Below are positions 29,816 to 35,290 of a stretch of DNA of 64,000 nt, piece by piece (the first letter of the stretch is position 1; every line of letters starts with the position of its first letter). The position numbers were made by a program, and so were the translations under genes. The DNA comes from Oikopleura dioica (Eukaryota > Animalia > Chordata), in assembly GCA_907165135.1 (NCBI GenBank), contig OU015567.1:7564001-7628000 (forward strand), in the 5' to 3' direction. Under the pieces are notes generated by a model. That model made no database searches. It was not told the DNA's origin and saw only the letters and a list, made by a program, of their open reading frames with translations.

Positions 29816-30870
29816 TTATTTGGAGAGGAGTTCAGTCGGAAGTGGGAAAACAATCGTGGAGTTTTTCTGAGCAGCGACTGTATTGAGAGTTTGGAGGTAT
29901 CTGAAGGAAACTTGCGGTTAGGGGTTGAATCTATAAATTACCGAAGTTGGAGGGCCTTGGGATTAGAAGCCATCATTCGCGCAGCATCAGCAATGTTTTT
30001 GGCTGCTTCCCGTTCGCCAACAGCCTGGGTCAGTTTGGCCTTTGCTTCTCGAGAAGCTTCAGCTTCTGCGGCCATGGCGCGTTGCATCTTTGAATTAACA
30101 ATTAAGACACTTATCTTGGTATAAAACTGACCGCAGGTGGAAGAATAATGTCTTTCACTTCGACGCTCTCTACTTTGATTCCCCAGTCGTCGGTGGCCTC
30201 ATCGAGGCTTCTTTGCAAAACCCGGGAGATTTCTTCTCGCTGATTCAAAATCTCCTGCAAGCTCTTTTGGCCAAGGATATTTCGCAAATGAGTTTGCGCA
30301 AGAAGACGCTTAAATAAAAAAACCGTGAGTGAATCAGATTTATGGGAAAACTTACGGTTGTGTGATTGTAATTCATGACAGAATCGATGGCTGCAAGAGG
30401 TTTGACAATTTTATACTGCGCAACTGCATCGACTCGGATAGTGACTGCGTCCTTGGATAAAACTTCTTGGCGGGGGATATCGAAGACTTGAGTACGGATA
30501 TCAACCTTGTGAAAATTTGAAATGAATGAACAATGCTTTAAATAAGATCTTTTTACCTTCTCAATGTGGTTGACAAAGAAATTGAGGCAGAACATACCCC
30601 TTTTCTCGCTGGAACCAGCTTGAAGTCGGCCAAGCTGGTAAATGACAGCTCTCTCGTAGTCCTCGAACGATTGTTGGAATCGCTCATTCTAGTAGCGGTA
30701 ATTACCTGGATCGTTTGAACCGCCTGACACCAGAAACACGGGAAGATTATGATCAGAATCCAGGTCAAAAATACCAAGATTCCGTCAAAAATACCAGGTG
30801 GTTTAGCTTCATCTTCATTCTTTCGTGGAATATACTCTTGATGCGCGATTTGCGTGTTGTTGAAAGTCAT
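29816..30870 (-). CDS. STOM: Stomatin/band-7 (SPFH) protein
   Basis: TM segment, then YERAVIYQLGRL, VDIRTQVFDIPRQEVLSKDAVTIRVDAV, WGIKVESVEVKDI, MQRAMAAEAEASREAKAK, ALQLRYLQTL...NSTIVFPLP. Confidence 0.92.
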
Positions 30871-31172
30871 GTTTGCGCGAATGTGCTTGTATTCAAAATA
30901 AACTAGGTTAGAAATTCGTGTCTAGAAACTTTTGGACACTTTTTTGACTACTAGTAACTTTACTAGTAAATGCATCTGCCAATTCCTGAATGCGTAAATT
31001 TCCTGAATTCTTGAAACAAATAAAGAACAAATTAGACACTTATCTTACAACTAACTCGAGTAAATAGAGTCTTGTCGCAGAGTATGATTTCAATTCAGAG
31101 TATCCTTTTATTGTTTTTCAATGAAGAAGAAAGATAAATGCATAGATTTCCGTGGCAATGATACTTGACAAT

Positions 31173-33887
31173 TTAGATGAAAATAATTCCTTCTGGGTGT
31201 TCATTAAAATGCTCTTTGAATTCATTCGCTTTGATGATGCCTTCTTCGAGGCGGTTGCAAATCTTTCGGGCCCAGATCATGGGCCAGAGTTCTGGCTTTC
31301 TCTTTCTTTGGATTGAATGTTGGGGAGGCGCTTGTAAATCGTATAGAATTGACTGAAGCAAGTAATGGGTCATCGTTGTTGAGCGGTTGATCAGATGGAC
31401 ACTTATATTGGGTTTTATTATGCATGCAATACTCTGAGCAGTTGATACTTCAATAAATACCCTTCCCTGATAGGACGAATATTGCTCACAGCCGCGCCTC
31501 TTGTGGCAAACTCTTTCATAGGAGCTATATGGATATGGTTGCCACTGATCTCTTTTCTTCGGTCCAATCGTCGGTCAATTCCCTCTATTTTAGCCATTGT
31601 GACTCTCAAATTTGCACCATCCAAGTACTTCATCAGATGACCATGATCTCTTTGATTGATCATTCCCTTTTCATTTGACCATTTTGCTTTATTTGCGTCT
31701 TCGAGCATTTGATTGAAAATGTGAACGTCGAACTGACCACCAGCAAGAAGTAAAATCTCATCCGGTTCATACTTGAGTTTGGTTAAGATTGTGTTGATAC
31801 TGTCGGCGATATCTGAATAGCTTGTTTGTATCATAGTCCGAACAAAATTACAAACCTTCCATGAAGGTTCTTTGACCGTCATCCATGTATTCATTTGTGA
31901 GTTTAACGACTGGGTGCCCGGCTTTGAGGATGTTGCATGTATTGTACTGATTTTGCTTTCGCTCTTGATGATTGTAAACAAAACTGAAGTAGCCATTCGA
32001 TTCATGAATTGCAATAATCAACAAGGTTTTATTCTTCGGATAGCCTGTTAAAGTCCAATTACGAGTTTGTTTTGGCGCTCCAAGTTTTGTGATGATATCA
32101 TTCACTCGATTTTTCGAGTACTTTTCTATCCAGCGATCCCTTTTGAAAGATTTAATCGGAGTAACGCTGGAGAAATGTACCTGTCGCTTTGAGGGAATCT
32201 TGATTCAGTTTGGACAAAGACGGGCAAGTGAATATTGATGCACCTCTTCTTGATCTCTCTGTAAAGATCCTCCCGGAAAAGTGGCAAGATGAGCCACAGC
32301 AACGAGCTCTTGTTCTGCTCCCATGTATTGGGTAACTTTGCTACCCATGATTTTGGATCATGTTTTTCCTCGTTTTCGATCATTATCTCGCTAGGAGCTT
32401 TCATTTTGATTCCATTATCGTTGCAAATTTGCATCATCTGCGACTTAACAGCTCCTACAGCTTCTAGCTCAGAGCAGCACATAATTGTCCAGTTCTTAAT
32501 CGCTACTTTCTTGAGCTTGAGGTTAACTCTGCCTCTCGGAATCAAATCAGGATCGCATTTGAGTGTGTTGCCAGCGGATGTGAACCAAAGTGGAAACATT
32601 AAATGCATGGAACCAGCTTTTTGAAACATAAATCGAATCGCTTTCTGTGCATGAGCAAGAATAGAATTTTCCATTCGATATCGATCAGTATTTGCGACAG
32701 CTAGGTACTGCTGTTTCTGTGGATCGACAGTTCCAGTCATTGTCCACAACTCTGGAACGATAATTCTTTTCTCAAGCCAGTCAACCCCTGTCATGTCTGG
32801 ACCGGAATCGAAAGCGACAGTCAAGTATCCATCCTTTTCGTGCTTGTTTTGAAAGCAAATAGGCTGTTCGGCGATAGTGATGTTCAACCCTTGCTTTTCG
32901 TACATGCTCTTGATCGTCAGCCGTTTATTGTACGTTCTTTTTCCACCAGGGTTGGCGGTAACTGTCATGCATGAGTTTGGGCGAGCGTCTTTGCGGATGC
33001 CATCGATAGACGCGAACACGTCGAGTTCCTCATTGTAGACAACCTGGAATTGAATGGCTTCATCTATAGCTTGATCAAGTGACTCTTGACGGTTATTGTC
33101 ATCGTTGTCAAAGGCCTCTCTTATAATGGCCATGTATTCCAAAAGCGTGTAGTCCTCTACAATGTTTTGAACGATGACTGCTAAGTGCACTTTTCCTAAA
33201 GAATTCTTTTAGAATCCATACAATGGATTTATTAAGAAACCCGTTGCTTCGTCTTCGAAGAAGTGACTGAGCCGATAACTGTCATATCTATACGTTCTCT
33301 CCCTCACTGGAATTTCGTTTTCATCCCCGTCTCTATCATGATCATCATCTTTCTCAGTAGCATCTATCGGCGCAAATGCTAACTCAGGGTCAAAGTCGGA
33401 GAAGATCATCTGCGCCATGAGCTGGGAAAAAGTGGCACCACCGACGTTTCTATCATCCGTCAGTTTACATGTATCTATAAGCTTCAGATTCCATGCGTCT
33501 CCATGTTCTTCCGGAAAAGGCTTGACTTTAAAGAGGGAGATAATTTGACAGCAGAAGTTCCCATCACCGGCATCCTTCAATATTATGAAGAAAGGGAAAA
33601 AGAATGAGCAAAAAAACCTCTAAGAAATCATCATAGCCTCCTCTGATATGGAAGCCTTCTTTGGTTTGCAGAACTTCTTCTCCACCGTTATCTTTTAACA
33701 GCAAGATCGGAGTCTTCGGAGTGATTCTCGCGGACTTACTCGCGAATAGAAAGTTGCGATACGCTCTTTCTACTTCTTCGTAGGTTAACTGTTCTTCACA
33801 CGGTGATTTGAAGACTATTTCGTACCAAAAATACTTTCTTATGTTTGGTATGTCCAAGTTGATGGAGTGAGTCCATTCGAGGGCCAT
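31173..33887 (-). CDS. Highly divergent PIWI-clade Argonaute (N-L1-PAZ-MID-PIWI), predicted slicer-inactive
   Basis: N: THSINLDIPNIRKYFWYEIVFKSP. L1: VHLAVIVQNIVEDYTLLEYM. PAZ: TIKSMYEKQGLNITIAEQPI...IIVPELWTMTG. MID: LYREIKKRC...DIITKLGA. PIWI: TLLIIAIHE, PDEILLLAGG, TTMTHYLL, PMIWARKICNR, C-terminal GIIFI*. Six exons are joined by short introns; the last junction is ambiguous. Confidence 0.75.
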
Positions 33888-34029
33888 TCTAAATAATCTG
33901 CGCTAAGACACAGCTTGTCAAAAAAAAAAGGTTTGATAAAGGCAGTGTAAACGGTAACATCAGAGAAAGATAGCTTTACATGTAAAATTTGGTCCTAAAA
34001 GCGTGCTGATTCCGCTAATTTACAATGAA

Positions 34030-34597
34030 TTACGATTCCATTTCGTCCTCATTGTTTTTCTGCTCGGCGTTTTCTTTATCGGCTTCAGTGTTCACTTCAC
34101 CGCCGGCTTCTTCTTCAGCCTCGTTTTCACCCTTTTCTTCTTCAGCTTTTTTTTCCTTCTTTTCTTTTGCCTAAATCTTGTTTTATCAAAAGCTACAGTG
34201 GAGAGCGAAAACCTTGTTAGCTTTCTTCACTTTTGCAGCTTCGAGCTCTGATTTCACAAGTGGAACCAAATCGTCAAATTCTGTCTCACTCAGAGCATCG
34301 ATGATGTCTGATTCTTTTAGCGTTTTTCGCTGATGATTCCTTTTATTATTTGATTGTTGCGGAAATGTACCTTGTTATTTGAAGCAACTTCTGTAGCAGT
34401 TTGACTGAGGTAAACGATGAAAAGTGATGTAGCTTTAGCAATCGCAAGTTTTGCGTCCTTTGATGAGAAAATGTTTCAATTTGAAAACTGGGAAAGTTCC
34501 AAACCTTGGCAACGATAGATCCTGGTGGAAGAGCCTCTTTGATAATTCGTGCTACGACAGCGTTTGGTAAAGAGAGATCTTCAACTTTATCGGACAT
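34030..34597 (-). CDS. POLE3: DNA polymerase epsilon subunit 3 / CHRAC17 histone-fold protein
   Basis: MSDKVEDLSLPNAVVARIIKEALP...AK|DAKLAIAKATSLFIVYL...KRKTLKESDIIDALSETEFDDLVP, followed by an acidic tail. Confidence 0.85.

Positions 34598-34758: not shown

Positions 34759-35290
<532 letters not shown>

Follow-up and report, generated by a model that had tools for sequence, protein, structure and literature searches.

A divergent Oikopleura dioica gene with a PIWI-clade PAZ–MID module and a putatively PIWI-derived, probably non-slicing rear third

Argonaute proteins hold a small guide by its two ends: the PAZ domain binds the 3' end and the MID domain holds the 5'-phosphate. In the chordate Oikopleura dioica, several Ago genes and a single divergent Piwi gene have been assigned to the standard subfamilies by reciprocal BLAST (Henriet et al, 2015; PMC4402516), and in a 2025 survey the number of its Piwi-like and Tudor genes is described as reduced (PMC12147562). 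Here we analyse a minus-strand gene at positions 33887 to 31173 of a 64,000-nucleotide stretch of O. dioica DNA (assembly GCA_907165135.1, contig OU015567.1, positions 7,564,001 to 7,628,000; hereafter the window, with positions counted from its first letter). A previous reading of the bare sequence, made by a model and called the sequence-only reading below, had proposed that fragmented open reading frames (ORFs) at this locus hide an extremely divergent, slicer-dead PIWI/Argonaute protein.

The gene is transcribed and spliced; it comprises six exons and encodes 827 residues. For the central 340 residues, encoded by exon 3, the predicted fold is that of a PAZ domain of the PIWI type and, after it, a MID domain. 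On balance, we favour the view that the gene is a functional, lineage-restricted paralog of PIWI-clade Argonautes, with a remodelled PIWI domain, that acts without cleavage.

PAZ and MID domains of the PIWI clade

The exons were searched one at a time, and relatives were used where their sequence is naturally contiguous. With single sequences, the protein is nearly invisible. Pfam returned no match at threshold for any window exon, the sole match being ArgoMid on exon 3, below threshold (E = 0.02), and a phmmer search of the PDB with exon 3 gave no match. A HMMER search of 1.84 billion representative sequences yielded seven matches, one ortholog fragment with 77% identity and six fragments with 26–43%, and no conventional Argonaute was among them. 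All seven are exon-sized ORFs on marine metagenome contigs, and one of the fragments has a weak Pfam PAZ match of its own (E = 4e-4). An alignment-led search of sequences in the 300–954-residue range found P0003 and P0008 only.

Together, the relatives outline a small family. The window lineage itself is represented by variants L016, L017 and L018, with 89–97% nucleotide identity, from Tara and other marine metagenomes. A sister lineage comprises L001 (Tara Oceans), L014 and L015 (JGI) as well as the ORFs P0012–P0014, with ~52–79% amino-acid identity per exon. A distant branch, with ~27% identity in exon 3, includes P0003 and P0008–P0011 on contigs L002–L004, and the genes on these contigs are of a compact eukaryotic kind. 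Fragments P0002 and P0004–P0007 indicate that further lineages exist.

With a profile made from exon 3 plus its seven relatives (A1), the best PDB match was Ephydatia Piwi-A (EfPiwi; E = 3.5e-10). MILI, MIWI and Hili came next, entries for the isolated PAZ and MID domains among them. The only two non-Piwi rows, both for an unrelated protein, had E values above 0.1; the remaining matches were all Piwi. A broader alignment (A10) again had Piwi-A as its best match (E = 4.4e-12), and a further profile (A9) matched the MIWI MID domain (E = 3.3e-6). Significant PDB sequence matches were Piwi proteins in 16 of 16 cases, and AGO-clade chains were absent from the profile matches even up to an E value of 10. 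In the hidden Markov model (HMM) alignment, the PAZ motif of the window protein pairs with LVPELCAMTGLTD of EfPiwi. The alignment begins after exon 2, at the L1/PAZ border. The stretch ahead of the PAZ domain measures ~200 residues, which is also the case in Argonautes. Language-model features also grouped exon 3 with PAZ/Argonaute clusters (best score 0.96; 10 of the 10 best matches).

Structure prediction points in the same direction. An AlphaFold2 model of exon 3, made from A1, has a mean predicted local distance difference test (pLDDT) score of 67, with both domains at ~80 and a disordered linker. Among the top 20 Foldseek entries for this model, 19 belong to the PIWI clade, and rank 15 is taken by HrAgo1 of Asgard archaea. 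E values run from 5e-11 to 7e-7 for MILI, Siwi, Hili, EfPiwi, Piwi and MIWI, whereas animal AGO-clade chains reach 6e-6 or worse, roughly 10^5 poorer than the PIWI clade; entries consisting of PAZ only have TMt values of 0.76–0.78. In VIA comparisons, model residues 14–157 match the Hiwi1 PAZ domain with Z = 13.8 and a root-mean-square deviation (rmsd) of 2.6 Å over 105 of 107 residues, and residues 223–337 match the MID domains of MIWI (Z = 11.9) and EfPiwi (Z = 11.3, rmsd 3.0 Å). Sequence statistics, together with the predicted structure, establish that exon 3 encodes the PAZ–linker–MID portion of a PIWI-clade Argonaute.

The alignments also cover most of the 5'-phosphate pocket. In the HMM alignments, the family motif REDxYxxIK lies opposite RKDKYDAIKK in MIWI and RDDRYSAVKK in EfPiwi, and both the tyrosine and the first lysine are retained. 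PIPSQVL of EfPiwi pairs with HLPVFVQ in the window, which places phenylalanine at the position of the pocket glutamine. L014 and the distant branch have leucine at this position, and it is hydrophobic in every lineage. The second pocket lysine lies in the sequence ITK(L/I)G, which is invariant in the family and is located beyond any significant alignment.

Much of what the sequence-only reading had claimed for this part of the protein is thereby confirmed. Membership in the PIWI/Argonaute family holds for PAZ–MID on the profile, Foldseek and VIA results; divergence beyond ordinary paralogs is evident, with no exon at the Pfam threshold and no conventional Argonaute retrieved from the representatives; and the alignment to MIWI and EfPiwi bears out a MID pocket that keeps Y and K and has F in place of Q. 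As to the proposed domain order N–L1–PAZ–MID–PIWI, profile and structure support PAZ followed by MID, and the labels N, L1 and PIWI are without a supporting alignment.

The rear third and its catalytic positions

The ~290 residues directly after the MID domain (exons 4–6; hereafter the rear third) are ~15–25% identical between two branches of the family, most contigs of other members being too short to include this region. Several landmarks are nevertheless preserved. The motif ITK(L/I)G opens the rear third at the MID/PIWI border; RKRxPELWPxIxARK is invariant across three lineages; and a hydrophobic C-terminus (IIFI, IVFI or LVYI) follows 25–29 residues beyond it. In addition, LRVTMAKIEGIDRRL in exon 5 is located, as we presume, where Piwi proteins have a strand-plus-KR-x-x-TR motif, which we treat as a lead and not as a test. 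The only positive signal from the searches comes from the ortholog ORF P0012, which has a sub-threshold match to Pfam Piwi (E = 0.14; 11.8 bits versus a cut-off of 28.9) that pairs residues 42–125 with profile positions 215–298 of 302 in exactly collinear fashion.

Because of its location after a PIWI-clade MID domain, its length, ITKLG, RKRxPELWPxIxARK and the hydrophobic C-terminus, we read the rear third as a degenerate PIWI domain, and these sequence features make a PIWI origin likely. The last ~290 residues would be the descendant of a PIWI (RNase H-like) domain that has been remodelled past recognition. Retained features would be the lysine in KLG, a hydrophobic C-terminal tail at the usual distance and, instead of …PxxYAHKLA…, a C-terminal helix with …PxIxARK….

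A series of results weighs against the protein being an Argonaute of this kind. Pfam found no match in window exons 4–6 or in a contiguous 250-residue piece from a distant relative, five C-terminal family profiles (A2, A5, A6, A7 and A11) gave only noise against the PDB, and language-model features of a distant relative's 239-residue rear piece (P0009) carried no Piwi signal. An AlphaFold2 model of L014 exons 5 and 6 (180 residues, 10 alignment rows) has a pLDDT of 33 and no usable fold. The Piwi match of P0012 is no stronger than its match to the unrelated E3_UFM1_ligase (E = 0.05), and it is absent in 95%-identical copies of the same ORF. At the other end of the protein, neither Pfam nor the PDB profile alignment detected N or L1 similarity in exons 1 and 2. 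With the pocket glutamine gone, the 5'-phosphate may not be bound in the normal way. Finally, two oligo-dT laboratory RNA-seq runs with the same species label contain zero reads at 90% likeness, a result that is uninformative as a test. The cultures behind these runs (searched over positions 31100–34000) may stem from another cryptic lineage, or the gene may be silent in the sampled stage.

The alternative that survives best is a PAZ–MID protein whose rear third is not PIWI-derived, having been replaced or having decayed, and which would serve as an RNA-end binder or scaffold and not as an Argonaute-type effector. It accommodates two observations, that no method applied to exons 4–6 identified a PIWI domain and that the rear third has low identity between branches. 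However, the position, the ~290-residue length, ITKLG, …PxIxARK… and the hydrophobic C-terminus 25–29 residues further on all sit as they do in Piwi, and the weak Pfam Piwi match is exactly collinear. Moreover, PIWI-clade proteins are not known to have exchanged their PIWI domain. We therefore consider this alternative unlikely.

A different proposal accepts the PIWI origin and gives the protein another guide. The gene may represent an appendicularian-restricted, PIWI-derived branch whose remodelled PIWI domain and pocket, with glutamine changed to phenylalanine or leucine, load a non-canonical guide, such as DNA or RNA with an unusual 5' end, and it would then be a candidate effector of the DNA-triggered silencing (DNAi) of O. 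dioica. We regard this as improbable. A connection with DNAi or a small-DNA pathway had been floated in the sequence-only reading and finds no support: the sequence is silent on guide chemistry, and the words 'Argonaute', 'mechanism' and 'Dicer' are absent from one O. dioica DNAi paper (PMC5345011).

If the rear third is a degenerate PIWI domain, as we prefer to read it, its catalytic positions can be placed at the level of motifs. At this level of placement, the DEDH/DEDD tetrad of slicer-competent Argonautes is not found:

Window: I at the first Asp position (LLIIAIHES), G at the second Asp position (LLLAGGQF), R at the His position (IWARK); motif-level placement
Ortholog: LIIAIWES at the first Asp position, LLLAGG at the second Asp position, IYARK at the His position; motif-level placement
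Distant branch: LILALYF at the first Asp position, LLKSNG at the second Asp position, IYARK at the His position; motif-level placement

At these three motif positions, an acidic residue or histidine is conserved in no lineage, and where the window has a glutamate close to the border of exons 4 and 5, the ortholog has glutamine. With I, G and R presumably occupying the places of the catalytic Asp, Asp and His, and other non-catalytic residues in the distant relative, target cutting would be impossible. Provided that the domain is PIWI-derived, slicing has probably been lost, judging from these motifs. The motif strings on which the earlier claim of a slicer-dead protein was based are present; the residue-by-residue catalytic alignment behind that claim stands without a statistical or structural PIWI match.

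That the protein is still a nuclease, with an active site that has moved or with a tetrad that is present and hidden by a wrong motif alignment, is quite improbable. The catalytic alignment is indeed at motif level, and the rear third is constrained like the rest of the protein, with ratios of non-synonymous to synonymous change per site (pN/pS) of 0.03–0.13. Against this stand the I, G and R of the window and the non-catalytic residues that also occupy these positions in the ortholog and the distant branch.

Gene structure, selection and genomic neighbours

Read from the DNA, the gene has six exons separated by five GT–AG introns of 41–59 nucleotides each. The exons total 2484 nucleotides, corresponding to 827 codons plus TAA, and four codons, for G, R, D and G, are split by introns. 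The features are as follows:

33887–33618, minus strand: exon 1, 90 codons, with ATG at 33887–33885; start and sequence conserved in L001 and L014 (51% amino-acid identity)
33617–33575, minus strand: intron 1, 43 nucleotides, GT–AG; exactly skipped in metatranscriptome contig X2 record 3
33574–33241, minus strand: exon 2, 334 nucleotides; 65–69% amino-acid identity in L001 and L014; located where the N/L1 region would be
33240–33196, minus strand: intron 2, 45 nucleotides, GT–AG; phase fits; absent from L001 and L014
33195–32181, minus strand: exon 3, 1015 nucleotides, 337 codons; PAZ, linker and MID
33154–32723, minus strand: PAZ domain, exon 3 residues ~14–157; includes IIVPELWTMTGTVD
32527–32183, minus strand: MID domain, exon 3 residues ~223–337; includes REDLYREIKK
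32180–32140, minus strand: intron 3, 41 nucleotides, GT–AG; the sole GT–AG pair that restores the frame
32139–31856, minus strand: exon 4, 284 nucleotides; ITKLG motif and LLIIAIHES; 69–77% amino-acid identity in orthologs; presumed start of the degenerate PIWI domain
31855–31813, minus strand: intron 4, 43 nucleotides, GT–AG; exactly skipped in metatranscriptome contig X1 record 1
31812–31461, minus strand: exon 5, 352 nucleotides; EILLLAGGQF and LRVTMAKIEGIDRRL; 52% amino-acid identity in orthologs; presumed PIWI core
31460–31402, minus strand: intron 5, 59 nucleotides, GT–AG; absent, in frame, from L001, L014 and L015
31401–31173, minus strand: exon 6, 75 codons plus TAA; THYLL, RKRKPELWPMIWARK and C-terminal IIFI
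31112–31107, minus strand: candidate AATAAA polyadenylation signal, ~60 nucleotides past the stop; read from the sequence

Pfam recognises no domain in exon 1. The proposal that the ORF fragments join through short introns into a protein of about 830 residues agrees with this model, and the motifs quoted in its support (IIVPELWTMTG, YREIKK, DIITKLG, IAIH, LAGG, THYLL, PMIWARKICNR and the terminal IIFI) are all present in the minus-strand translations.

Introns 1 and 4 are precisely spliced out in Logan contigs from two marine metatranscriptome studies. The corresponding gaps, at 33575–33617 and 31813–31855, are bounded by CT..AC on the plus strand, that is, GT..AG on the gene strand. The marine metagenome loci L001, L014 and L015 contain all exons in order and lack introns 2 and 5. 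In these sister loci, exons 2 and 3 as well as exons 5 and 6 form single open frames with junctions exactly as predicted, and the exon 2/3 junction in L001 and L014 amounts to one codon. At the site of intron 3, the distant homologs P0003 and P0008 read uninterrupted through …PTEDKDRWMQKYARKRYEEIITKIG…, and their …PTEDKDRWMQKY…ITKIG is collinear with the joined …PQSD-R-DRWIEKY…ITKLG of the window. This uninterrupted reading supports a canonical 41-nucleotide intron 3, which yields …PQSD-R-DRWIEKYSKNRVNDIITKLG…. Splicing, for which a check against RNA data had been suggested, is thus confirmed by transcript contigs for introns 1 and 4, and introns 2, 3 and 5 are placed by comparison with homologs.

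Exon–intron structure varies within the family. The presence of introns 2 and 5 in the window lineage and not in the sister lineage (L001, L014 and L015) points to intron gain or loss among close relatives. Exon 4 of L014 (L014:4324-4632) has nine extra residues (…LGWAPTGQK…) relative to the near-identical L015 and L001 and to the window, for which either a short insertion that keeps the frame or a mini-intron that went unrecognised may account. In the distant branch, locus L002:5001-7901 encodes the N-terminus through MID in one intronless open frame of 545 codons, and its rear third is interrupted by a ~400-nucleotide intron and a second, short intron, so that exon structure differs greatly between branches.

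Could this gene be the single Oikopleura piwi that has already been described? One divergent Piwi was indeed reported, by reciprocal BLAST (Henriet et al, 2015; PMC4402516). However, exon 3 finds no conventional Argonaute in the 1.84 billion representatives and has no single-sequence match in the PDB. Given that exon 3 is invisible to single-sequence searches, reciprocal BLAST would hardly be able to find the gene, and we hold its identity with the known piwi to be very improbable. The titles and abstracts of 12 papers containing both 'Oikopleura' and 'Argonaute' describe no such gene.

Selection was assessed in two ranges of divergence. In the comparison with L014, the reading frame stays open in each of the six exons, and pN is 0.18 per site versus a pS of 0.76, at which synonymous sites are saturated. 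With this saturation, Jukes–Cantor-corrected dN/dS was incomputable for three exons and for the six summed, and the closer variants L016 (89% nucleotide identity), L017 and L018 (97%), which extend from the last part of exon 3 to exon 6, were used instead. Compared with L017, exons differ at 2.3% and introns at 11.9% of positions, a roughly fivefold faster divergence of the introns, and the exon changes comprise 26 synonymous versus 3 amino-acid-changing ones. Compared with L016, the differences are 8.9% in exons and 22.8% in introns, and all four indels fall within intron 5. For exons 4–6, pN/pS is 0.13, 0.03 and 0.05 in the three variant comparisons, and the MID part of exon 3 behaves alike. 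Exon 5 is 100% identical in the population variant P0015, the intron-derived flanks of which differ.

The gene is thus under strong purifying selection, and the rear third is constrained like the rest. On the test that had been put forward for a pseudogene, namely neutral dN/dS, it proves to be live. A decaying pseudogene or a set of mis-joined ORF fragments, which the fragmented ORFs of the raw sequence and the lack of Pfam matches at threshold might suggest, is scarcely credible, the pseudogene reading being excluded by the spliced contigs, the open ortholog exons, the saturated synonymous and low non-synonymous change relative to L014, the low pN/pS of the variants with 26 synonymous versus 3 non-synonymous changes, and indels confined to the intron.

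The 64-kb window contains no second copy that we could find. Its neighbours are ordinary genes: downstream an SPFH/Band-7 (stomatin-like) gene (29891–30870, minus strand) and upstream exons of a ubiquitin-conjugating enzyme (34759–35019, minus strand), with Pfam E values of 3e-11 and 3e-10. On the upstream side, gene order is conserved between the window and L014, in support of orthology of the two loci; synteny stops downstream of the stop codon. Between the gene and its upstream neighbour, at 34346–34597 on the minus strand, lies an ORF of 83 residues that starts MSDKVEDLSLPNAVVARIIKEALP and has no Pfam match at E = 0.01; we take it to resemble a histone-fold protein of the NC2-beta/Dr1 type.

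Implications and comparison with known Argonautes

In the scenario that we favour, that of a PIWI-clade paralog with a remodelled PIWI domain, the protein would hold a small guide RNA by both ends and, by analogy with Drosophila Piwi or mouse MIWI2, may work by the recruitment or blocking of partners, with no cutting of a target. What is new is a very divergent PIWI-derived gene, which would be an additional one, in an animal described as having one Piwi. For O. dioica, this one Piwi and a strongly reduced complement of Tudor and piRNA-pathway genes are described (PMC4402516; PMC12147562). Its retroelements are nevertheless kept under control, and it shows a DNA-triggered silencing that is unexplained. 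An expressed and tightly constrained second gene of PIWI origin, missed by standard domain searches, would alter the small-RNA parts list of this chordate model. It would also illustrate, in a natural case, how far an Argonaute may diverge with the PAZ and MID modules for the guide ends still in place, and it may help to define which parts of the PIWI domain non-slicing functions can do without.

The window protein has PAZ and MID folds in the same order as EfPiwi, Siwi, MILI, MIWI, Hili and Drosophila Piwi. Further features in common with animal PIWI-clade proteins are the PAZ motif (I/L)VPEL-x-x-MTG(T/L)(V/T)D, the Y…K of the MID pocket, a length of ~830 residues, the post-MID …KLG… lysine and the hydrophobic C-terminus. 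In contrast to these proteins, with which it is only 12–22% identical in the recognisable part, it reaches no Pfam threshold, and its putative PIWI domain goes unrecognised by the methods tried. The pocket glutamine is replaced by phenylalanine or leucine, and the catalytic Asp, Asp and His are missing at the motif positions. An N-terminal RG/RA cluster is also lacking, with a single RGG near residue 81.

With slicer-independent Piwi proteins (Drosophila Piwi and mouse MIWI2) and with dead Argonautes (human AGO1/4 and the nematode WAGOs), the protein would share a non-cleaving mode of guide binding. These proteins keep a recognisable PIWI domain, and several of them most or all of the tetrad, whereas in the window protein the whole domain would be remodelled. 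Compared with the annotated Piwi and Ago genes of O. dioica (PMC4402516), the gene belongs to the same superfamily and presumably to the same organism. Those genes were found by reciprocal BLAST, which would hardly retrieve this one, and it would be an additional PIWI-derived gene of the species.

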